Assembly: GCA_020891255.1 (NCBI GenBank)
Contig: BQFW01000013.1
Coordinates: forward strand, 372,001 to 436,000
Length of the DNA: 64,000 nucleotides
Direction of reading: 5' to 3'
Origin: Entomortierella parvispora E1425
Lineage: Eukaryota; Fungi; Mortierellomycota
Part shown: in pieces, positions 28,001-47,345 of the stretch
How the letters are laid out: each line of letters begins with the position of its first letter
How positions within the stretch are numbered: position 1 is the first letter of the stretch
Notes under the pieces: model-generated
Seen by the model: the letters and a program-made list of their open reading frames with translations, nothing else
The model's database searches: none
What the model was told of the DNA's origin: nothing
Made by a program: the position numbers and the translations under genes

Positions 28001-29507
28001 GAGAGAGAAGATGAGGGGGAAGATAAAGAGAGCAGAACACTCGGTGAGTTCAAGGTCGAGGACAAGAGAGGATTGCGGGAAGAAGAGCTTTTGCTTTTGC
28101 TTATGAAGATGGTGGTGTTTGTGGGGCCAACAGAAACGGGGCCACGGGCCAGGATCTCGCAGTTAGTCAAATGAGCAGCAAAACGGACAAAACAATGAAA
28201 GAAGAGAAAAAAGATACGATGGACTGTCAGAGCTGAATATGAGATTGCCGCGTTTACATTGTTTGTTGTTTTGGATTGGGTGATGAGCAGTTGTTCTTTC
28301 ATGTTCACCCATGCATACTGGCAGCGAGGCCTGACGTGAGTCTGTTCTCGATCATACCTTTGATAGATAGAATGCATAGAGGGGGTGACCTTTTTTTTAT
28401 GAGAGCCGGCAGGCATTCAAGGTGAACAAACAAAACTCACGGAGGCAAAAACAGTAAGACCGGTATCTTCTAACATGAGAAGGATATCCAATATGGCAAG
28501 CCCGCCGCTCTCGCGCGTACCGTGCTCTCCTTCCTCTTGCACTCTGCCTCCCTCCTCCTCCTCCTTCCCTCCTTCCCTCCTTCCCTTCTTCCCTCCCTCA
28601 TTGTCATCGCGTTTTTATATATATATATATATTTTTTTATTCATGCATCGATCCGCGTCGCCTTTTTTTTTTTTGTCGCAAGCTATCACGCCTTTCACAT
28701 TGATCTAGGACATTTCGGCTGGTTCTGGTCCATGTGTGCTGCAGATAATGTGCAGGCATTGAGTAGGCAAGAAAAGTCTCCGCATTCAGAACCCGTCAAT
28801 TTCGATATTTCATCCTTCAAGGCCGGCCCTCTGTACAAATCATTCTTACGCCTTGTAAGGCTGCTTTTCAATTACATGCCTCGGCCAGCCTTTCTCTGTC
28901 TCCCTCTCTAGTCCTGTCCGCTGTTGATTTGTTTGCCTGCCTCTTTCTGTCTCTCGCTCACCCTGATCGATGCGGAGGACCCACCCTGGTCCCTTTTTTT
29001 GCTCTGGATGGCACTCTGGATGGCAAGGCACCGACTGTTGGGAACAAGGGTTGTAACGGTCAGACAACTGCAGCATGCATCATGTACCTGTGTCAAAGAT
29101 ACAAACCTACCCACTCGTGCTGATTGCGACAAAAGACAGGCAACCCTTTCTCGTTACGATCGTGGATTTTGAACCACGAGGAAACCAAGAAACGATCGAC
29201 ACGATCGCTGTGCACAAGGCATGCTTCTGTGCGGCTGTGTAATAGCACAGCGTCCTTGTCCATCCTGTGTTTCGTGCTTTGTGCTTGGATGGTCCCCGCG
29301 TACTCCCCTTTTTGTTCGCACGCGTGCCTTTTTCAGTCATATGCAATCTACGCGCATCCATTGTGCAGCAGACACGCGTATACTCCCACTATCTCTCTCA
29401 TATCTGAAAAACACACCTTCAAGCTCAACGAAAGATCATCACCGTCGTTACCAAAAAAAAAGCAATCTTTCTTCGTGTTCCTTTTCCCTCTATTGCAAGC
29501 TATCGAT

Positions 29508-32351
29508 CTAGTTTCCTGCAAAGGCACCAACAGCCAGACACAGGTTCCGCTTCGTGAACTGCACCTTATAGATAGGAGTCCTCTTGGTGGGGAACGTTGC
29601 CAGGTGGTCCTCTGATTCGGCAGGGCCTGCATGGGCTGCGGCCGCTGCGGCCTTCTTGTTCAACCGATCCATAGCCTGTGCATGGCTCTGATGGACAGTT
29701 GGAGACGAGGCTACCGTACCGTTTGCGCCAGAAGCATCGTGAACAATGCGGTGAGAGGCAGGCTGGTCCGAATTGATCTCCTTCTTGACATCCCACGCTC
29801 TAACTGTGCAATCAGCACTGCCCGACATCAGGATACTGCCGTCTTGACTGAAATCCAGAGAGTAAACCACGCCTTGATGACCCGTCATCTTCTTCACCCT
29901 CCGTCCAGAACCAAGATCCCAAAGCAAAATCGACTTGTCCTCGCCCGCAGAAGCCATTGTCCGACCATCTGGAGAGACTGCAATCGCATTGATAGCCCCC
30001 ACATGCTCCGTGAAAACACGGACACAGGTTCCTCGCTGTACATCCCACAGTCTTGCTGTCTTGTCGCTCGATCCTGTCACCAGGTACTTTGAATTAGGGT
30101 GGAATTTGACCACCTAAAAGAAAGAAAGACACCAGTTGTTTAGTCCAGTAGTTCTAAATATCCACAATTCAATGATTCCAGCTTCGAGCAAGCTCTCTGC
30201 AGCGAACTTCAGACAACCAACTTACATCAACGTCTGACATATGGCCGGCAAAGATGCGCAGAGGATAAATTTGGTCGCAGCTCCACAGCCTTGCTGTCCG
30301 ATCATGGGAGGCCGTAGCAAAATAGAATCCTTGAGGTCCAAAGTCCACATCCCAGACTGGGTAGTTATGACCCTTGTAACACACCACATTCGTCAAAGTG
30401 TTGGTGCTCCAAAGGCGGGCTATGATAATGAAGGAGGGAAAAATCCATCAAAAAATAATGTTAGTGTCGAATTCTATCCTGTGTTGGGTGGTATGGCGAT
30501 GGTCTCTCGTCGTGTTCTTACCTGTCTTATCTTCTGAGCAGGTAATAAGGTACTTGTTGTCGGGACTGAAGCTCGCACCAAAGACTGGTCCTGCGTGTCC
30601 AATAAGCTTCCTTGAATCTGTACCATTCTTTTCGCGAACACGGTCGAGGTCATTTGCTATATTTTGTCGAAGTAAATTCATGTCAGCCAAGCGTTTGATG
30701 AAGTAGCTACCAACAATGAACCCAAAGTCAAGAAAAAGAATGCGACGTACAATCACTGATGCGTGCTGGGTTGAAGTTGCTCCTGAATCCTCGAAGCTTT
30801 TCGCCCTTCAAACTCCAGATTCGCACATAGGACTCTGAGAATCCCGCTGCCATCAAGGTCGCATCCTCAGAAACTGCCACACAGTTAATGTTCTTGTGGG
30901 CGTTGTGGAATGTGTAGGCGCATATTGATGGCAAGCTAGATGGTCCAAGTGCAACTCGTTTCCGTGAATCCCGCAGCGCCTCAATCTCTGCTTGAATATC
31001 GCTTCCTTTACTATAACATTGACAATGCAACGAAAGCAAAGTATGTTAATAAGCCACAGATCACCATTAATTGTTAGATCTACCGCCGTGCCTAACTTTG
31101 CGACACTTACAAAGGGGGCATGGGCACATCATCCCGTGATGGGGTATCCGCCTCTGCCTCTGTCTTCACCTTCTTGTATTCCTCCATAAGTGAGACAGTC
31201 GCTGGTGGCTCTCCTCCGTTGATGGTCGAGTCATGGGCCGCTTGAGCCTCTTCCTCTTTCAGGGTCTGCTCCACTTGCTCTCGAAGGGCTGCATCTGGAG
31301 GCATCTGTCCCAGAGTCACTTTTTGCTTGTTGAATGTCGTCAGTTGATGGGTTCCATGTCCAGCAATTCCAATGATCTCATCCTCCTTTGAACTGGCAGG
31401 TCCGACCTGGATATTAAGATGTTGGTTCACAATGCGGAGCAAGACAATAAACTTGTTGTCCTGCAAAAATGCAATCAAGAGCTCCAACGAGACTGGGGAC
31501 ATGCGGAGGTGGTATTTGTTGTTTTTGTACATTTGCGCCAGTTCATTTTCCTTGACATGTTGAACCTCGATCACGGTTGCCAGTCGAATTATGTCCGGTG
31601 AATGCAGTTCAATGTGATCCGATCTGTATGTGTCCATGAAATGCTTGGCTAAAAGGAGAACAGAAAAGCAAGATCATGATTTCAGGTAAGAAATCTGTCT
31701 CAAGGTAGCTCAAAATGTGGTGATTTCCAAAATCCTTCAATACCTTGAGTCTTCAATCCACGATCAACAAGGTGCAGATAGCTGTGAACAAACAGGGGGT
31801 ACAACACAGAGATGAGCTCTGGCTAAGAGGGGTCGAGTAGAAGGTAATAATCCAGTCAGAATGAACCCTGAAACAGTCATCAGCCCTGAACTTCGTCGAA
31901 TTTGTTGCATATCGTCTACCTTGTACAGGTCCAGTGAGTTCTCAACCCAAAGTCGGAGTGATGAATACGCCTGGTCATAAGCATCTGGGTTTGCCATTTC
32001 GGCTTTGCTGTTCAGCATGCCATTACCAAACCGAGATGGGATCAACCCATCAATCTCGGAGGACAGTGCATCGTTGTATGAGGCCTCCAGTTCTTCCAGG
32101 CTCAACAGGTTTGCTTCCCGCTTGAGAACATACTCTGCTTTCTTGTAGCCCTTCTGGTTCAAGTAGTTGAGAACAATCCGGTCGACCTCCTGCGGTGTGT
32201 GGGGGGTTGCAGCAGCGGGTGCAGCGGCTGGTGTAGCAGCGGGAGGTTGCGATGGAGGCTGGGGAGCAGGTTGGATGCCAGCAGAGGGAGGATTGGACGA
32301 GGACGAGGCGGCGGCATTAGAGCCGTGGCCTGGATCAGAAGGGTCGGCCAT
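29508..32351 (-). CDS. TAF5: TFIID/SAGA subunit 5 (LisH, NTD2, WD40)
   Basis: [19 protein letters not shown] (LisH); [20 protein letters not shown]|[16 protein letters not shown] (NTD2); WD repeats [32 protein letters not shown] and [23 protein letters not shown]. Confidence 0.95.
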
Positions 32352-32936: not shown

Positions 32937-34769
<1,833 letters not shown>

Positions 34770-35305: not shown

Positions 35306-38121
35306 CTAGTCCATAGGTTCCTCTTTGATGTAAATCTCCATAGGTTCCTCCTTGATGGCAGCCAGAGGGGAGCCCCCTGGGTTGGAAGACCGAGACGCGG
35401 CATGTGCCACCTTGAAGAAGGTATCCTTGTTGTCATAAATCCGTCGGGTCTTGACCACACCGCCCTTGGGACCCACTCTGCTGTTGCTACCAGAAGAAGC
35501 CGTCGCAGCTGCCGCAGCCGCCGAGGCAGCAGAGGCAACACGGGCCTGATGGGCACGTCGTCGGATATAAGCCGGGACCGGGGTCGAGCTGGCCTTGGCC
35601 ACCGACGGCACCAAGCTGGTGGCCGCCTCCTCTGTTGAATTCTTCAAGCCCTGGTCGGTTGTTGCCGTCGAGTTGTCAAACATGCCCACGGGGATGATGG
35701 GGAATCGAATCACTTGCTCATGGTCGCCCAAACCCTTGCCGCTGACCACACGCGAAGAAGTGACTTCGACATCCAGTCTCAGGTACCGTTGCTCAGTCGA
35801 GCTACCGTCTGCAGAAGCCTTGCCGCCGTGGTTGGGCATCCAAGGTGGGTATTGACTCTTTTCCGATCCGGCCGTGTTCGATCCAAGGACACCATCCAGT
35901 GGTGAAAGAAGCGAGAGTCGGGGTCGACGGATTTCACCATTGGTAGCCTGGGCTGATCCAGCAGCCTTGGACACACTAGCCGATCGGAGCGAGTACAACA
36001 AGTTGGAGCAATACAGCCATGCATCCCGGTCGGGCTCGATCATGTCTTCGGATCCAATATCGGGACGGGCCGCCCAGTGCAATTGCTCGGGTGATTGAGC
36101 TACAAACCCAACGCTCTTCACGGTCTCGGTCTCAGTCTCCATTGCAGATGTCTCTGGTGTCTTGACGGCCGTGGCGGGGATATCCACTGGGGGTTGTGCT
36201 GATGCTGCCGTGCTCGTAACAGGGGTCTTGGCCTGAGCGGCGTGCACGGTCACCGGCTGATGTCCCAACCAGGTTTGAAGTGCTCTGTTATCCGAAAAGA
36301 CAATGAGGTCCGTCATGTTGTTGTTGCCACTGGGGTCGCGTACTTGTCCAGAGATCGTAGGGTTCTTTGAGTAAGAATTGAGGGCACGTCCAACAATGCT
36401 AAAAGAAAGGATAATGAGGGTTAGCAAAGCCCCCCTTTTTTCCAAAAAAAAAAAAAAAACAATCACATTCTCTAACAGTCGTCAGATTCACCACATACCT
36501 AGAGCCAATTCTTGGACGATCGACAGATCTACCACCGACCATGAGCGTCTCCAGCTTGCCACCGGGCAGGTTGAAAAGAGCAAATGAGAAAAGGATAATC
36601 TAAACAGACGAAAACACGGAGAAAAGAGAGATACAAAATGGAAAGGTTAGTATTGCACCCAAATCGATCAATGCCTCCCCCCTATTGATGAGAATCAAGC
36701 CATTGGGAATGCGCGGTTCGAAACGGATATGGACAACTCACCATGAAGACGACTCCTGTTGCCTTGGAGTTCAATCCTCGCTCCGTGTCCATGCCTCGGG
36801 CATTGCGCTCGATATCCATGTCCACACGAAGAGAGTCCGAGTGGGGGCGGTGAGAGAGAATGATGATCTGGCGCTGAAGACGTTCACATTCCTGCAAAGC
36901 CGAGTCGCGCTCCTCTGTCAGGACCTTGACGTTCTCCTCCAGCTCCGTGACACGCTCCTTCAGCTCCTGGTTATCCATCTTGAGCAGGTCTGTGTGACTC
37001 TCCAGCAGATTGATATGCTCCCGCTTGCGCTTGCGTGAGAGTAGTGCCGCCGCCCTGTTCTTAATTAAGCGCTCCTGTCGTTTGGCATGCGCCGTCATCA
37101 CTGCCTCAGACTGCGGCTTTTCGTCGGGGATCAGAGTCGATTTCACTAGGACGGGGTTCGAACGAGCCAAACTGGGCGTCAGAGCAGGCACAATCGATGG
37201 CCGACGAGCGGCAGCAGCGCCCGCCTGGGCTTGACCCAGAGGAGTCTGAGATGACGACGTTGATGCTGACACCGCGGTTGCTGGAGCTGGCAGGAGAGCA
37301 GGCGAGAGTGGCGGTGATTGTTTCGTAAACGCATCATGGACCGAGACGGGTGGCGAAGGCGGCACGGGTGCCCGGCTGGCAATGGCTTGCGGTTGCGGTG
37401 CTAGTGACACTAGAGGTTTCAAGGGGGCCAGCGCAGGCAGCGTCGTGGGCTGCGAAGGTGCAGCAGCCAGCTTCTTGGCCTTTTTGGACCGACGCTCGCT
37501 CTTGACTGAGGCAACTGGCGAAGGAGGCGCTTGACCGGCAGGCTTGGTCAAAGGCGCCCTTGAGGTAGGCGTATTACTGCTGTTGTTGGTGTTGTTGAGA
37601 GGGGTGGTGTTGCTATTCTTGGTATTACTATCAAAAAGACCAGGTCCTGACAGGGGCTGCATCAACGCGCCATCGACATTGGGAAAGAGAGGCCATGATC
37701 CCGATTGTTGCTGTTGTTGCTGGAGAAGGAGCTGCTGTTGCGGAGTGAGATCGCCACCCAGAAGAGGAAAGGTCGAGGAAGGCGGGTGGGTGAGATCAGA
37801 ATAGACGTATTGCCAGTACTCGAGTGGGCTGCTGTCCATGGCCACGTCGGATCCAGATCCTTCATCGCACGAGTCTGATGCGCTGTTGTGGGGTGATCCT
37901 GACGACTCGGAATAGGTGCCGACAGAGGTCGGGGGCGAGGGCGGGTGGAGGAGACTCTGGTACTTCAGGTCGCTGTCGGCGGGCAGGGGGTCAAAAAAGT
38001 GGGACGAGTCAAAGGGACTCGGGTTGGCTGTGGTCTGGGACTCGAGAAAGTCTGTGGTGAGAAAGGACAGGATCGAGTCGTCCTCGATCATGTTGGAGTT
38101 GTCGCTCGAAGATGGGTCCAT
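35306..38121 (-). CDS. Membrane-tethered bZIP transcription factor with ATF6-like architecture
   Basis: Exons 38121-36742, 36599-36499 and 36398-35306 join in frame. bZIP KRQERLIKNRAAALLSRKRKREH plus zipper; TM GVVFM|IILFSFALFNLP; C-terminal domain with RPRLSLLSP and LRLDVEVTSSRVV. Confidence 0.85.
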
Positions 38122-38650
38122 GGTTCAGATGCCGGTCGTATTGGGGGAAAGTGTGGTTACAAGGGTAAGGAAAGCAAAGAGAGAGAGGGAATCGCGTCCC
38201 TTGGGCAGGCCCGTTTTAGTGCTGTTTCCAGGAGTGAGGGAGGAGGGTTGGAACGGTGAACTGTGAACTGTGAACTGTGAAGAAAGGGAGGGAAGGGAAG
38301 GGAAGGGAAGGGGTGGGTGGGGTGGATGAGAAGGGAGGGGGGATGGTGCCAGGGGGGAAAGCAATGGATGGATGTGCCAAATATGTGCAAGAGAGACAAG
38401 GGGGTGTGAGAGTACAGTAGTATGTGAAGAAGGGAGAGGACGAGAAGGGTCCGGGCGCAATAGGAATGATCTCGAGAAGAATGAAAGAGTGAAGAGTGAA
38501 GAGAGAAGATAGATTGAAGGAAAGAAAGAGACAAGAGAGAATGAACGAATGAATGAATGAACGAACGAACGAACGAACGAATGACATCACCATCCGCACA
38601 GACAGAGTCAAAGGCAGAGCGGAGCCAAGCGAAGGAAATAGACCCACCCT

Positions 38651-39825: not shown

Positions 39826-42800
39826 TTACAGGCGATCCATGAAGCGATCCAATGTTGGGAGCTCCTCCTTGAGACCCTTGCGCTTGCGAATCTGCAAGAT
39901 CTTTTCCTGCAACTTGAGATCATCCGTTGCCACTCCGTTCATCAGCTCCCAGTGATCAAACACGGACTGAGGGAAGGCTTGACCTCCAGTGGCCTGACGA
40001 AGATCCGACGTGAATCCAAACGATTCCGCAACGGGCAAATGGGCCTTGACAATGTACAAGGGCGTACCAGGGCGCTGCTCCTCACCAATCGTGTGACCGC
40101 GACGCTTGTTCAACACACCATAGATGCCTCCCATGGCCTGCTCGGGACACGTAATCTCGACCAAGTAGATGGGCTCCATCAGACCGGGCTCGGCGACCAT
40201 GTGGGCTGCGTACATGGCACTACGAGCTGCTGGGATAATCTGTCCACCACCACGATGGATAGCATCAGCATGAAGGACAACATCCATAATGTTGAAACGA
40301 ACACCACGCATGTTCTCATCCGCGAAGGGTCCCTCACGTGTGGCCCAGTTGAAGGCGGCCACGCACGAATCCTTGATTTCACTCAAGTAAGCAACTCCCT
40401 TGGTCATGTCCACGAGAACGTTGGGACCGTTCGAATCAGGTCCGAAAGCCCAGATCTTACGAGCCTCCTGGTTGTCCCACTCATACTCTTCTTGCAACAC
40501 ACGGGCACGAGCCTTGAACTCATCACGGGGTCCAACGATACCCTTCTCAATAGCGTCCGCCAAGTTCTCGCCAATGGGCATGGCTCGGACAAAGAGACGG
40601 TTGTGCTTGTTGGGCGACTTGGCCAGGGCGGTGACCGAGGACTCGGCCTTGACAGTCTCCTTGTACTGAACCACAGGGTCCGACTTGCGCAATGGAATCT
40701 GAGCGTGATCTTCCTCGAGATCCTTCAAGCAAATCTCAAGATGAAGTTCTCCAGAACCAGCAACAATGTGCTCTCCAGTGGGGGAAGTGAAGCAGAGAAC
40801 GCAAGGATCCGACTTTGAGAGACGCTTGAGACCTTCGACCAACTTCGGGAGATCGGCGGCGTTCTTGCACTCGACAGCAACTTGCACGACGGGCGAGACA
40901 GAGAACTTCATGACCTTCAAGTTGTGGGCAGTTTCTGAGGTGGTGATGGTACCAGACTTGAGCAGGAACTGATCTACACCCACCAAACCGACAATGTTAC
41001 CGGCAGGGCAGTCCTCGATGGGCTCGACATAGCGTCCCATCATCAGCACAATACGCTGCACAGACTTGACAAAGAGATCGGACTTGGAGCCGGGGGTATA
41101 GTTGGGTCCCTGAATGCGGACCTTGAGACCAGCACGGACAGTACCAGAGAAGACACGACCGAAAGCGTAGAAACGACCCTTATCGGTGGTGGGCACCATC
41201 TTGGAGATGTACAGCATGAGGGGACCGTCGGGATCACAGCCACGGATACCATTGGCACACTCGTCGTCAAGGGGACCTTCGTACAAGTTCTCGACACGGT
41301 ACTTCTGGGCCGTCACGGGAGAGGGCAAGTGGATAACTAACATCTCCATGAGAGCCTCACCAGCAGGCAAGAAGCGCTGCATGATGAGCTTGAGCAGGGG
41401 CTTGCCTTCCATATCCTTCTCATCCTGCTTCAATGAAATGTTGAGCTTCTCGAGCATGACGAAGGCGGTTTCCTTCTTTCCATTCATGACGGTATCAAAG
41501 ATCTTGAAGATGGGGTCCAAAACAAACTGGGAGAAAGCGCGCTCCAAAGGTTTGCCGTCGCCATCCGTGTTCTTGTTGGTCCACTTCTTGGTCGTGGGGT
41601 TGAAGTAGTTCTCGCCCCAGAGCTTCTCCATCATCTTTTGGCGATCAACACCAAACTTCTTGGAGTAACGCTGAGCAAACTGACGGATGGTGAAGGCCCA
41701 ACCGTGAAGACCGGAAGCAAAGGCCACAGTTCCCTTCTCGGGGTAGACCATGACATCGCCGAGGACCTTGTCGTGGTAGGTGGCGATGATGACGTTCACG
41801 GACTCGATGGTACGCTGGAAGGATTGGTAAAGATCCTCCTTGGTGACCTGCAGTTCGAGAAGGGCACGATCGACCTTGTTGATGACAACAACGGGCTTAA
41901 TACGCTCACCCAGAGCTTGACGCAAGACAGTCTCGGTCTGGACACAGACACCGTCAACGCAGTCGACGACGACCAAGGCACCATCAGTGACACGGAGGGC
42001 GGCCGTGACCTCGGACGAGAAGTCAACGTGTCCAGGGGAATCAATCAAGTTGATCAAGAATGCGGTACCTGGAATGAGACATTAAGACGTTACAAATGAG
42101 TTACAATTCTTCTTCTGAAATAGCATTGATTCAGAGAATCCACGGCTGCGACACAATAGCTTACCCTCGGTCTTTTGAGAGATATCCTTGATATCATCCT
42201 CAGTCATCTCGAAGTACAGGGAGATGGCAGTTGACTTGATGGTGATGCCACGCTCCTGCTCATCAGCACGGGTATCCGTAAAACGGGCATCACCAGCTCG
42301 CGCAGCGGAAATGATTCCGGCCTTGGAGACCAGTGAATCGGTCAAAGTGGACTTTCCGTGATCGACGTGGGCAATAACAGACATGTTACGGACGTTCGTC
42401 ACCTTGTCCATCTATAACAAGGCAGCACATGTAGAGAAGATCAGGATAGTCATTAGTTGTCAACGGCATTGGTATATTGTTTAGATGGATCGAGTAGGCG
42501 GGAAGCAAAAGTGGGTAGGTGCATGCATTCAGGTCCATAACCATGACGACTCTCCAAAAGGACGACGTCACCCCCTACAACACCAGATTCACGCTGCCGA
42601 TGAGGGCAACAGGGATAGAGTCGAGCGTGGGAATGATACAGCAACGAGTATACACATCACACGTTCCCTTTCCTCACTCTCATGTCCTTGCAGAGGAGAC
42701 ATGAAGTGAAAAAAAAGAAAAGAAAAAAAAAAGAAGAGGAAAAAAAAGCCTCGTGTGGTTCCCACGCCTGGCACAAAAGCCGTGCTAGGAGTATTCAAAA

Positions 42801-44010: not shown

Positions 44011-44819
44011 GTTCGTTCAACTTGCAGGGCAGAAGGAAGTAGGGCAGTGGGGGAGGGGAACAAAAGGATACAGAGTATACAACGGGAGGAAGGGGAAGAG
44101 GAAGTGGCTGATGAAGAAAAAGAAGAAAAGAAAAGAGAAAAAAGAAGCAAAGCGCGCGGATGCCTTCGTTTTTTATGCCGAAGGCCTCTGCGGGGACAGA
44201 TAGAGAGTCTGACTGCGTAACAGCAGCAGGGGACCATCACCAGTGGAAAAAAAAACCTCTCTCTCCCCATCAACAGCAATGGTAAACAATAACAAGCGCA
44301 AGCCCTTTTTTTTTCGTCCCCTTCTCCACCATCGAGCGCACGGCCGTTTTCGCCCCTCGCTCGACGAGAGAGCCGTCCAGAGAGACACTGCAGCATCAAA
44401 AAAAAAACTGGCAGACTGCGTCCCGACACGGCACGAGAGATCTCGCAGTCGAGCTGATTCCTTTTTTGGTGGTCCATGAGGCGCAACATCCATTGGAGCC
44501 AGAATGCGCTGAATGAGCAGAAGAGACCGAAACCTAGCCAGGGTGGCAGGCTTTTCTTTCTTCCAAAGTAGGAAAGTCCAGGGGCCATCTGCATTACCCC
44601 TACTGCTGTCCGTCTTCCTTTGTTCCAACCGTCCCCGCGCGTGTGAACTCTCGGGGGTCACGTTCATTTCCAGAAACGACGAAATTAGTGGCGTCCAGGC
44701 TCGGTTGCAGCAGCCCTTAATTGGCCATTCAAGGACCTTCTGCGGACGAAGATCTTCAGTGCCTTCTTTCTTGCTCGCCCTGCATCTCCTCGCCGTCTGT
44801 TTTCGTAACCAACGCGACC

Positions 44820-47345
44820 ATGGACTCTCCTCCAAACAGCAAAGCAACCTCACCATTGGTGTTTTCTACCTACACGCCACTCTTTTGCCGCTCTGGTGCA
44901 CCTTCCCCGTGGCAATCTTGCTACTCTCCTTTCAGTCAAATATGCTCTGCTCCAGCTCCCAAGTTTCGCCTGACAAGCTTTTCACCACCAACCCCGACTT
45001 TCAACCGATCTCAAGGATTGCTTAGTCCTACGACCATATTGAGCACCTCGTCATATTCGTCCTCAAGAGAACCACCTCCAGAAATATTGCCCACGATGGG
45101 CTTGGGTTCTTTCGCGATATCAACCGAGGATGGAGAGGGAAGAGTCGGTTTGAGAACGCACGAGTTGACCCAGAACGCAACCATAGCCTCTCCGACTATC
45201 AAATCGGAGGGCAAAGACGAACCGTCTCAAACAGAGGTCGACAGACTGCTTGATATGCTGACCAACATCCGGGATATGGCAATTTCTCCGAGTGCATTTG
45301 GAGACGTTCCCAACAGTCCAGTGCGTTGGATGTCTTCAGTGGCCAGTGCAGGACCCTGTTGGACAGCAGACACAAATGCTGCCACCATGTTTCTTCACCA
45401 CGACAAGTCTGTACTGCCGCCAGTACTACCCTCGACTTTTACTGCTACTCCACCTTCCAAATTGTTTAGTCCCCTACTTTCGAAGCCGAGGTCAGCATCT
45501 GTCCCAATCATGAAGCTTTCGCAGGATACATTTCTCCACTCGACATTGCCCATCTCTGCATCTCAGTCTGGCTTACAAGTCAGCCCATACTCTGACACGA
45601 GTGGGAGCTCAAGCCCAATGTATGGTCTCGAAACTTTGGATCTCAGAAGCCCATCTCCCAAAAGACAAAGGACCAGCAAGTATCAGCAGAGGATCTCGTC
45701 GCGGAAAGCAACAAAAGCCACAGAACCGTCCTACCAGTCCGGCCTTGTTTCTGATCAAGAACACGACTCCTTTGATGAACTTCTCTCGAGTTCAGACACT
45801 GACTCCACCGCCTCGACTGCCTGTTCAACTCATGCCCACCAAGAGACTTGTTCATCGGCACAGCATGAAAACTTTTCGGATGGCAGACGCTGGGTGATTG
45901 GAAGAGGCGCGATGAACGAAGGCATGGAACTGGATGAGTTCAACAATATGGAGAGTCAAAGATGCAAACGACCGCTCTTCACTTCCAGCTGGGCAGGCTC
46001 AAACCATGGTCTGGACTTAAGACGCACTTTTAGCACTTTGAAGAGAGACAACCCTCAGGATCCTGATTGTTTTCGGAATCAGACACCATACTCTGACCCC
46101 ATGGTTGCTGTTAACAAGTGCGTGGAATCTTCTCCGAGTCTTACCGGACCAGACAACAACATCTCCGTTGCTTCTCTGGATGCTGGGAGGGATATACAAC
46201 CAGACTCACAGCCCTTTATGACATTTTATTATTCGCTTGAAAGACGGCAGTGCTGTGACAACAGCGCTCACAGCCACAACACGTCGACTTCTTCGGAACG
46301 CGTTTTAAAAGACAGGGAAGCAGCCCCTTCTACTTTTAGAATGCGCCTCAGAAGCGGACGGCAGGTACTTTCAGGTGGCAGGAACAAGCCCACATTGTCT
46401 ATTGGGTTTCATGTTGCCAACGACTCTTCCTTCATCGATGAATCAACCTTACAGCACGACAAGGAGCTGTCGGCATCTCATCTGCATCCTCAGATCAAGG
46501 TCAAGGATGAAGACTGCGCAGCCCCAGACCGAAGGCGCAAAAAAGGAGCTCGCCACATTTCAAGCGCCGACCCAGACAAGAACAACGATAGTCCTCTTGC
46601 TGGTCTTACCCCGAGGCAGCTTCGCAACATCGACCTGCGGCATCTTTACCCTCGTTTCTTTGCATTGCGAATTGCCTGTGATACTTCTCCTCATTGCCTC
46701 AGTAAGCGAGGGACATCGTCGTCGTCGTCCCGAACATCACAGGCCGTTTTCAACCCACCCCGTTCAGACGACGATTTGTATACTCCTCGGTGGACCAAAG
46801 GCACGGGTCGAGAGAAAGTAGGTCTTTGCCCAATCTGCATGCCTGAACGCGAGTTTTGGCAAAAGATGAAATGCTCTGCCTATTGGTACCATCTTCACTA
46901 TCATCATGGTATATCCGCGCAAACTGGGGCTGCGTATCCAGCCCCTGAGCTGATCGAGTTCAAGGACTTTGGTTTCTTGACGGCGATGCAAAACAAATCG
47001 ACAAAATCAAGACGGTTGTTGTCCATCTTACCTACTGCGGGACAATACGACGCTGACTTTCAGGCAACCTCTTCGGCCGACGACGATTCCCACATCTTAA
47101 CTCGGCTGGAAGTCAAAGAGATGATCTCAGAGCCGGATTCGTCTGCTTGTCAGGAGCTCTTCGAGGAGGCTTTGACGCGTCTGAGTATGATCCCTGCGGG
47201 TTTGTGCGGCAATTGTTCAAAGTGGGTTCCACTTGATAGCTTGCTTCGGGAGTCGGGAGGAATCCAGGAGATTCCATGGTGGAAACACACGCAGCAATGC
47301 TTGAAAGCCTCTCTTGGTGCCTCTCGGATCAAACCAAGAAGATAA
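44820..47345 (+). CDS. Rua1 C-terminal (DUF4451-like) putative zinc-binding transcription regulator
   Basis: Single long ORF with first in-frame ATG at 44820. C-terminal DLYTPRWTKGTGREKVGLCPIC..SAYWYHLHYHHGISAQTG and GLCGNCSKWVPL..WWKHTQQC match my recollection of the Rua1/Mug43 domain. Confidence 0.75.
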   Translation: MDSPPNSKATSPLVFSTYTPLFCRSGAPSPWQSCYSPFSQICSAPAPKFRLTSFSPPTPTFNRSQGLLSPTTILSTSSYSSSREPPPEILPTMGLGSFAISTEDGEGRVGLRTHELTQNATIASPTIKSEGKDEPSQTEVDRLLDMLTNIRDMAISPSAFGDVPNSPVRWMSSVASAGPCWTADTNAATMFLHHDKSVLPPVLPSTFTATPPSKLFSPLLSKPRSASVPIMKLSQDTFLHSTLPISASQSGLQVSPYSDTSGSSSPMYGLETLDLRSPSPKRQRTSKYQQRISSRKATKATEPSYQSGLVSDQEHDSFDELLSSSDTDSTASTACSTHAHQETCSSAQHENFSDGRRWVIGRGAMNEGMELDEFNNMESQRCKRPLFTSSWAGSNHGLDLRRTFSTLKRDNPQDPDCFRNQTPYSDPMVAVNKCVESSPSLTGPDNNISVASLDAGRDIQPDSQPFMTFYYSLERRQCCDNSAHSHNTSTSSERVLKDREAAPSTFRMRLRSGRQVLSGGRNKPTLSIGFHVANDSSFIDESTLQHDKELSASHLHPQIKVKDEDCAAPDRRRKKGARHISSADPDKNNDSPLAGLTPRQLRNIDLRHLYPRFFALRIACDTSPHCLSKRGTSSSSSRTSQAVFNPPRSDDDLYTPRWTKGTGREKVGLCPICMPEREFWQKMKCSAYWYHLHYHHGISAQTGAAYPAPELIEFKDFGFLTAMQNKSTKSRRLLSILPTAGQYDADFQATSSADDDSHILTRLEVKEMISEPDSSACQELFEEALTRLSMIPAGLCGNCSKWVPLDSLLRESGGIQEIPWWKHTQQCLKASLGASRIKPRR

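Follow-up and report, generated by a model that had tools for sequence, protein, structure and literature searches.

A probable ATF6-family, membrane-tethered bZIP protein in Entomortierella parvispora and other non-Dikarya fungi

INTRODUCTION

In reviews and genome surveys, Ire1-Hac1 is the sole branch of the fungal unfolded protein response (UPR), and ATF6 and PERK are presented as additions made in metazoans. A gene of Entomortierella parvispora E1425 (Mortierellomycota) raises the question of whether some fungi also carry an ATF6-type factor. It lies on the minus strand of contig BQFW01000013.1 (assembly GCA_020891255.1), within positions 372,001 to 436,000; these 64,000 nucleotides are the window analyzed here, and all coordinates below refer to it. 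A first-pass annotation, made from the letters of the window alone, had proposed a full-length ATF6 orthologue and, with it, an ATF6-type branch of the UPR retained in this lineage. Of that proposal, an ATF6-like architecture, an ATF6-like basic region and homology of luminal profiles held up; support did not extend to strict orthology. We lean toward reading the product of the gene as an ATF6-family bZIP transcription factor of type II topology, tethered to the endoplasmic reticulum (ER) membrane, conserved in non-Dikarya fungi and released by proteolysis. Membership of the ATF6 family is probable on sequence comparison, and a role in the UPR is suggested by analogy.

RESULTS

A spliced gene for a bZIP protein with one membrane segment

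Two large open reading frames (ORFs) on the minus strand, 38121..36682 (479 amino acids, aa) and 36466..35306 (386 aa), are bridged by a short exon. The gene model rebuilt from the sequence has two introns, both conventional GT..AG, and the following parts.

38121..35306, minus strand: whole gene, three exons, 857-aa product, frame intact
36742..38121, minus strand: exon 1, residues 1-460, with the start codon, acidic/S-P-rich N-terminus, bZIP, linker and first six residues of the transmembrane (TM) helix; GTGAGT donor at 36741
Residues 1-335, in exon 1: acidic/S-P-rich N-terminus, from the translation
36916..37089, minus strand: bZIP domain, residues 345-402; Pfam bZIP_1 at E 1.5e-9 and bZIP_2 at E 3.3e-5
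Residues 347-369, in exon 1: bZIP basic region KRQERLIKNRAAALLSRKRKREH, present as quoted in the first-pass annotation
36600..36741, minus strand: intron 1, 142 nucleotides (nt), GTGAGT..TAG, splitting the TM helix after GVVFM
36564..36759, minus strand: TM helix TGVVFMIILFSFALFNLP, residues 455-472, divided between exons 1 and 2, with N-L-P at its luminal end
36499..36599, minus strand: exon 2, 101 nt, completing the TM helix (IILFSFALFNLP) and continuing into the juxtamembrane GGKLETLMVGGRSVDRPRIGS
36399..36498, minus strand: intron 2, 100 nt, GTATGT..TAG
35306..36398, minus strand: exon 3, luminal tail residues 494-857 and the stop codon

Evidence for splicing comes from contigs of four runs bearing the same species label, placed on the locus; no RNA run is listed. 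A contig of run X20, from a related strain (~87% identical), joins 36742 to 36599, so that intron 1 is removed exactly. In the same contig intron 2 is also gone; exons 2 and 3 meet where the model predicts, and the junction carries a single substitution. As the contig skips both introns, a spliced mRNA with an intact TM exists: the gene is expressed, and its message encodes the complete TM. The proposal of a spliced gene giving a protein with a bZIP, a TM and a C-terminal domain is borne out by the rebuilt model together with this contig, and every motif quoted in the first-pass annotation was located along the 857-aa product in the order given there.

The TM is contiguous only once intron 1 is spliced out. 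Its core, GVVFMIILFSFALFNLP (residues 456-472), is the sole Kyte-Doolittle peak of at least 2.0 in the protein (hydropathy 2.25), which agrees with the single TM proposed earlier, ending F-N-L-P. If intron 1 is retained, the frame runs through 19 further codons to a stop, giving a 479-aa bZIP without a complete TM. Contigs that contain the intron occur in runs X16 and X17 and the spliced contig in X20, all from one sample. Among the orthologues, the database models P0007, P0015, P0008 and P0020 (465-491 aa) stop at the position of intron 1. Contigs and shortened models of this kind could reflect genomic DNA, errors of annotation or an authentic soluble isoform.

The basic region resembles that of ATF6

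The basic region was compared over 28 residues with the family-labelled bZIPs in the supplement of Jindrich and Degnan (2016), a count of identities and not a phylogeny: annotated ATF6 proteins share 18/28 and 17/28 residues with it (Capitella and Daphnia), Hac1 14/28 and 13/28, OASIS 12/28 and XBP1 11/28. These counts support a basic region of ATF6 type, with annotated ATF6 closer than Hac1, OASIS or XBP1. Two Mucor bZIPs in that supplement have a basic region identical to that of E. parvispora, so the fungal TM-bZIP family was inside the data set of that study, which grouped the class as 'ATF6-HAC1' and did not detect the ATF6-specific domain in fungal bZIPs.

A family found across non-Dikarya fungi

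A search with exon 1 gave 149 matches, all of them fungal bZIPs and none a named ATF6. Full-length orthologues (710-837 aa, ~60% identity), all named "hypothetical," were present in every sampled genus of the Mortierellaceae, and bZIP proteins of Calcarisporiella, Endogone, Umbelopsis, many Mucorales and Coemansia were also found. Since orthologues of the same layout occur throughout the sampled Mortierellaceae, a chance ORF can be set aside.

A profile of the TM and luminal part, with the bZIP left out, gave 95 matches at E <= 1e-3 among 1.84 billion representative proteins. Every match inspected was a bZIP-TM protein sharing the same motifs or a fragment of one; because the query lacked the bZIP, its presence in the matches is an independent confirmation. 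No plant bZIP17/28 or CREB3/OASIS member was among the luminal-profile matches inspected. The named members belong to chytrids (Geranomyces, Powellomyces and Thoreauomyces), to Basidiobolus, Neoconidiobolus, Entomophthora, Thamnocephalis, Syncephalis, Mycoemilia, Martensiomyces and Coemansia, and to Phycomyces, Backusella, Spinellus, Circinella, Mycotypha, Fennellomyces and Actinomortierella. All named members are from non-Dikarya fungi and none is from Dikarya; the only database labels are "hypothetical" and "bZIP domain-containing." By these matches, the family is conserved across chytrids, Zoopagomycota, Mucoromycota and Mortierellomycota.

Further TM-bZIP relatives occur in the Mucorales, namely P0046, P0069 and P0072 (Absidia, Chlamydoabsidia) and proteins of the P0082/P0068/P0113 type (Mucor). 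Their luminal tails are short and lack the conserved luminal motifs; the Mucor ones share the basic region (S2JBT0). The Mucor virulence regulators atf1 and atf2 were considered as family members and rejected, having no TM.

A near-invariant TM and a candidate cleavage site

The TM is nearly letter-for-letter constant, as TGVVFMIILFSFALF[NTS]LP, in Mortierellaceae, Mucorales, Endogone and Calcarisporiella, with a recognizable variant in Coemansia. The luminal end of the TM, N-L-P, is similar to the N..P signal in substrates of the site-2 protease (S2P), and the Pro is nearly invariant across the fungal family. Cleavage of ATF6 by S2P needs the N and P of NYGP (PMC7981912). A second element lies in the lumen, as follows.

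36377..36391, minus strand: GRALN, residues 497-501, candidate site-1-type motif (R-x-hydrophobic-x), 25 residues past the TM

Motifs of the R-x-hydrophobic-x form recur 24-31 residues past the TM, as RAL[N/D/G] in Mortierellaceae, RMFL in Calcarisporiella, RLLL in Kickxellales and RPVF in Syncephalis.

Conserved islands in a variable luminal tail

The luminal tail measures 385 aa. Searches with exon 3 returned no family from Pfam and no sequence match from PDB. Four short elements stand out, two of them predicted as strands and one as a helix in both of the AlphaFold2 (AF2) models described below.

36266..36286, minus strand: RALQTWL, residues 532-538, conserved amphipathic helix with the sequon NMT before it; W nearly invariant; helix in both AF2 models
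36008..36031, minus strand: DRDAWLYC, residues 617-624, strand with a near-invariant Tyr, aligned to RR.D..Y.FC of the bridge proteins (see below)
35900..35926, minus strand: RPRLSLLSP, residues 652-660, conserved beta strand (family P.LSL.SP), P invariant; strand in the AF2 models
35744..35785, minus strand: YLRLDVEVTSSRVV, residues 699-712, conserved beta strand, L and D invariant; strand in the AF2 models

The family consensus at YLRLDVEVTSSRVV is YLQIDV.V..SR.V, and the bridge proteins have QVDCEV there. An alignment of the family from the TM to the C-terminus shows a mostly variable tail with few conserved blocks: LTVGG after the TM, TDL(V)....LQ.W(I/L), the Tyr block (YLYS/LYC), P.LSL.SP and YLQIDV.V..SR.V. 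Mean identity of the Mortierellaceae proteins to that of E. parvispora is 0.87 in the bZIP, 0.96 in the TM and 0.24-0.46 in the linkers; it is 0.92 in the NMTDL..LQTWL block, 0.83 in the RPRLSLLSP block and 0.77 in the YLRLDVEV block. This regional pattern is the signature expected of purifying selection on the elements that the first-pass annotation had singled out. The tail has three N-glycosylation sequons, at N521, N735 and N747, one of them (NMT) directly preceding the conserved TDL block, which fits a luminal location. The E. parvispora tail also carries long lineage-specific low-complexity inserts. At its C-terminus (35309-35360, residues 841-857) is a duplicated acidic motif, IKEEPMEIYIKEEPMD, conserved in Mortierellaceae; the Mucorales counterparts end in a basic KK..RR.SRV tail.

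Bridge proteins connect the tail to ATF6-like proteins

The TM and luminal profile also reached ATF6-like proteins, P0182 at E 3e-7 and P0198 and P0199 at E 3-5e-4. With their relatives P0205-P0208 (loci L001 and L002), we call these the bridge proteins. They have a KNRESA-type basic region (17-20/28 identical to ATF6), a TM, a G-R-x-L-x-S motif 21-31 residues past it, and the luminal motifs RR.D..Y.FC, K.LSL..P and LQ(I/V)DCEV; the R-x-hydrophobic-x forms at the equivalent distance from the TM are RTLL, RSLQ and RVLK. Their bZIP profile matches PDB 6iak_A ("uncharacterized protein") at E 1e-24.

When luminal-only profiles of the fungal family (A6) and the bridge proteins (A5) were aligned with hhalign, the probability was 96.1%, with an E of 2.9e-9 and a score of 68.3, and the alignment spanned four collinear blocks (LQ.W, Tyr, P.LSL.SP and YLQIDV). 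All four elements listed above lie inside the aligned block. Thirty column shuffles scored at most 14.4 and the reversed profile 20.8. The Tyr block leads on to human ATF6, where 560-RRRGDTFYVVSFRRDH-575 contains Y567, an achromatopsia residue needed for ER-to-Golgi trafficking. This human stretch matches RR.D..Y.FC of the bridge proteins, itself aligned to the near-invariant fungal Tyr (DAWLYC). Among the human ATF6 motifs given in the first-pass annotation, RRRGDTFYVVSFRRDH and NYGP are confirmed in papers; GDTFYVV was found in the searched literature, and QIDCQV, RPKMSIV, HELRGWV and IILNYGP were not found there. The few conserved elements of the fungal tail, GR.L.S among them, follow one another in the same order in the ATF6-like proteins. 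Taken together, the comparisons support a conserved family of luminal motifs, profile-homologous to ATF6-like proteins, and make a convergent origin of these motifs unlikely.

DISCUSSION

The architecture of the protein, with a cytosolic activation region, a bZIP, a type II TM and a luminal tail, supports an ATF6-type assignment, and homology of this architecture, of the bZIP and of the luminal motifs is reasonably supported. For the signal, trafficking, proteases and targets we infer from metazoan and plant systems. The precursor would reside in the ER with its bZIP on the cytosolic side and would leave on a signal from the lumen or the membrane, of which protein-folding stress is the likeliest. 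A first clip might fall in the luminal juxtamembrane region, with R498-A-L-N501 as the candidate site, and a second cut inside the TM could be made by a site-2-type intramembrane protease requiring the helix-breaking N/P. The released 450-aa bZIP half would then enter the nucleus and act beside a separate Ire1-Hac1 branch.

Comparison with known systems places the protein closest in layout to metazoan ATF6 alpha and beta. The parts follow in the same order: an acidic N-terminus, then the bZIP, a TM immediately behind the zipper and a long luminal tail. The TM ends in N-x-P where ATF6 has NYGP, a candidate R-x-L-x motif lies ~25 residues into the lumen, and the Tyr motif is comparable to human 560-575. 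Unlike metazoan ATF6, the fungal candidate site has Asn/Asp at P1, the residue before the cut, and the tail has long low-complexity inserts and an acidic duplicated C-terminal motif. Hac1 and XBP1 belong to a related bZIP class and, like the fungal protein, would be expected to act in ER homeostasis. However, Hac1 is soluble, lacks a TM or luminal domain and depends on unconventional splicing, whereas the fungal protein has a TM and a long tail. The bridge proteins share with it a homologous TM and luminal motifs, and their GR.L.S site is as far from the TM as GRALN is, but they keep two luminal cysteines (Y.FC and DC.V) and the KNRESA-type basic region.

Several observations weigh against an ATF6-type factor released by proteolysis, and those on release come first. 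Outside Mortierellaceae, most lineages have Thr or Ser in place of the Asn of N-L-P. The R-x-hydrophobic-x juxtamembrane motif is missing in Mucorales. At P1, GRALN has Asn, and its orthologues have Asp or Gly; Asn and Asp are non-canonical for the site-1 protease (S1P). GRALN, proposed as a site-1 motif, fits in its position, about 25 residues after the TM, and is a less good fit in its sequence and in its conservation. Scans of the window for ER stress response elements and ATF6 sites found no more than chance would give, and no site close to the gene.

Such departures from the expected sites would suit a bZIP that belongs to the ATF6/Hac1 class and is tethered to a membrane but does not depend on S1P and S2P for its activation, an account we judge unlikely but still worth serious attention. 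Release could instead use the fungal SREBP machinery, either the Dsc E3 ligase with a rhomboid or a signal peptide peptidase. Ascomycetes cleave SREBP with Dsc, rhomboid and SppA and not with S1P/S2P, a precedent for such a route; basidiomycetes use the S2P homologue Stp1 for this cleavage. Proteolysis could also be bypassed if retention of intron 1 gave the 479-aa soluble bZIP: the intron lies inside the TM, the frame stays open for just 19 codons, and intron-bearing and intron-free contigs come from runs of one sample. Or the signal may be something other than misfolding, since the conservation of the TM is far above what anchoring alone requires, and a near-invariant TM would fit lipid or membrane sensing. 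Set against this account are the recurrence of R-x-hydrophobic-x at a fixed distance from the TM in distant lineages and in the bridge proteins, the nearly invariant Pro at the luminal end of the TM, and the chance that the intron-containing contigs are genomic DNA.

A second group of observations concerns the luminal tail. It has a single Cys (C624), and its strand reads LDVEV, with Val at the Cys position of DC.V, where human ATF6 presumably has a Cys. The conserved luminal cysteines of ATF6 are thus absent from the E. parvispora protein, and with one luminal Cys and Val at this position, disulfide control in the style of ATF6 is unlikely. No named metazoan ATF6 was hit by the fungal TM and luminal profile at the threshold given above, nor was any named ATF6 among the three matches to the luminal region of P0199 or the six to the bridge profile A4, a search limited by its word index. 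The link to ATF6 runs through unnamed ATF6-like intermediates from Logan/JGI assemblies. The profile comparison that the first-pass annotation had suggested for the C-terminal domain had a divided outcome, with homology to ATF6-like proteins found and no named metazoan ATF6 reached.

Structure prediction was less informative. For the E. parvispora luminal exon (53-sequence alignment), AF2 gave a mean predicted local distance difference test score (pLDDT) of 49, mostly disordered, with one helix (ALQTWLG) and three short strands (LYC, PRLSLLS and YLRLDVE). For the compact homologue P0063, from the TM to its end (90 sequences), the model reached a pLDDT of 59 and was also mostly disordered; comparison of folds is weak because the luminal part is predicted to be mostly disordered. 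A Foldseek search of AFDB Swiss-Prot (550,129 entries) with the P0063 TM and luminal model placed rat ATF6 alpha first and human ATF6 beta second, with mouse ATF6 beta, mouse ATF6 alpha and human ATF6 alpha at ranks 5, 6 and 11; the ATF6 alignments extend from the TM to near the luminal end, at E-values of 0.08-0.8 and TM-scores of ~0.16, which are non-significant. The weight of this result lies solely in a family named beforehand coming out on top. The same database searched with the E. parvispora luminal model returned disordered proteins only and no ATF6, and a shape-only search of the ESM Atlas gave noise. The structural comparison of the post-TM domain with ATF6, also suggested in the first-pass annotation, gave no significant Foldseek match. 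A language-model atlas search with exon 3 returned low-scoring unrelated clusters only. Luminal-only language-model features of P0182 and P0063 fell in the same clusters, with scores of 0.80-0.85, made up of nematode and flatworm hypothetical proteins and of bZIP-bearing clusters, including a 625-aa nematode one; this agreement may serve as a lead.

These results give some room to a fungus-specific TM-bZIP family in which only the bZIP is related to ATF6 and the shared luminal motifs are convergent or due to chance, though we find this distinctly improbable. No direct significant match to a named ATF6 would be expected of such a family, nor would a structural hit for E. parvispora's own model, and a largely disordered tail would suit it. 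The study of Jindrich and Degnan (2016) likewise saw no ATF6-specific domain in fungi despite including a Mucor member. Yet the luminal profiles align at a score of 68 over four collinear motifs where shuffles never exceed 14.4, and the family hypothesized beforehand took rank 1 of 550,129, with five ATF6 entries in the top 11. Moreover, the Tyr motif published for ATF6 occurs in the bridge proteins together with an ATF6-like bZIP, a TM and an RTLL site.

A CREB3/OASIS-type membrane bZIP or a counterpart of plant bZIP17/28 is very improbable: the type II membrane-tethered layout (bZIP, TM, short conserved luminal elements and an RxxL-like site) is common to all three groups, and bZIP28, bZIP17 and CREB3/OASIS are S1P/S2P-released with a luminal RxxL, but the basic region has 12/28 identities to OASIS, short of OASIS type, against 18/28 to ATF6, no CREB3-family or bZIP17/28 entry is in the Foldseek top 30 for P0063 beside the five ATF6 entries, and the luminal tail is long, as in ATF6.

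What would follow from an ATF6-family assignment reaches beyond this locus. It is possible, though we hold it with some doubt, that the ER- or membrane-stress response of non-Dikarya fungi has a second, ATF6-type branch that still works, one that dates back to the opisthokont ancestor or further and disappeared towards Dikarya. A conserved ATF6-like fungal bZIP would mean that the ATF6 lineage arose no later than the opisthokont ancestor and was lost in Dikarya. The fungal ER stress response may then not be Ire1-Hac1 only, and the rule that it is would be a peculiarity of Dikarya. The near-invariant TM (VVFMIILFSFALF.LP, in several phyla) would in that case be a recognition element for an intramembrane protease or a lipid signal. 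We found no description of ATF6-like proteins of Mucoromycota, Mortierellomycota, Zoopagomycota or chytrids in the searchable literature. The candidate second branch would be present in oleaginous production strains (Mortierella) and in agents of mucormycosis (Mucor, Rhizopus); some of these fungi are genetically manipulable, and the candidate is directly testable. The fungal proteins, which keep the Tyr strand and the TM Pro and lack the cysteines, also offer a natural comparison for the essential luminal and TM features of ATF6, and should be of clear interest to specialists in the UPR and in fungal evolution.

Flanking sequence and neighboring genes

Just upstream of the start codon, the 5' flank at 38240-38330 carries short tandem repeats, GTGAACT three times and GGGAAG four times. 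The neighboring genes, at 39826-42057 (minus), 29500-32351 (minus), 32937-33719 (plus) and 44721-47345 (plus), are ordinary housekeeping or regulatory genes. Their products comprise an EF-2/EF-G-type GTPase, a TAF5-like protein (LisH, TFIID_NTD2 and WD40), a Y_phosphatase2 protein and a Rua1_C transcription regulator.

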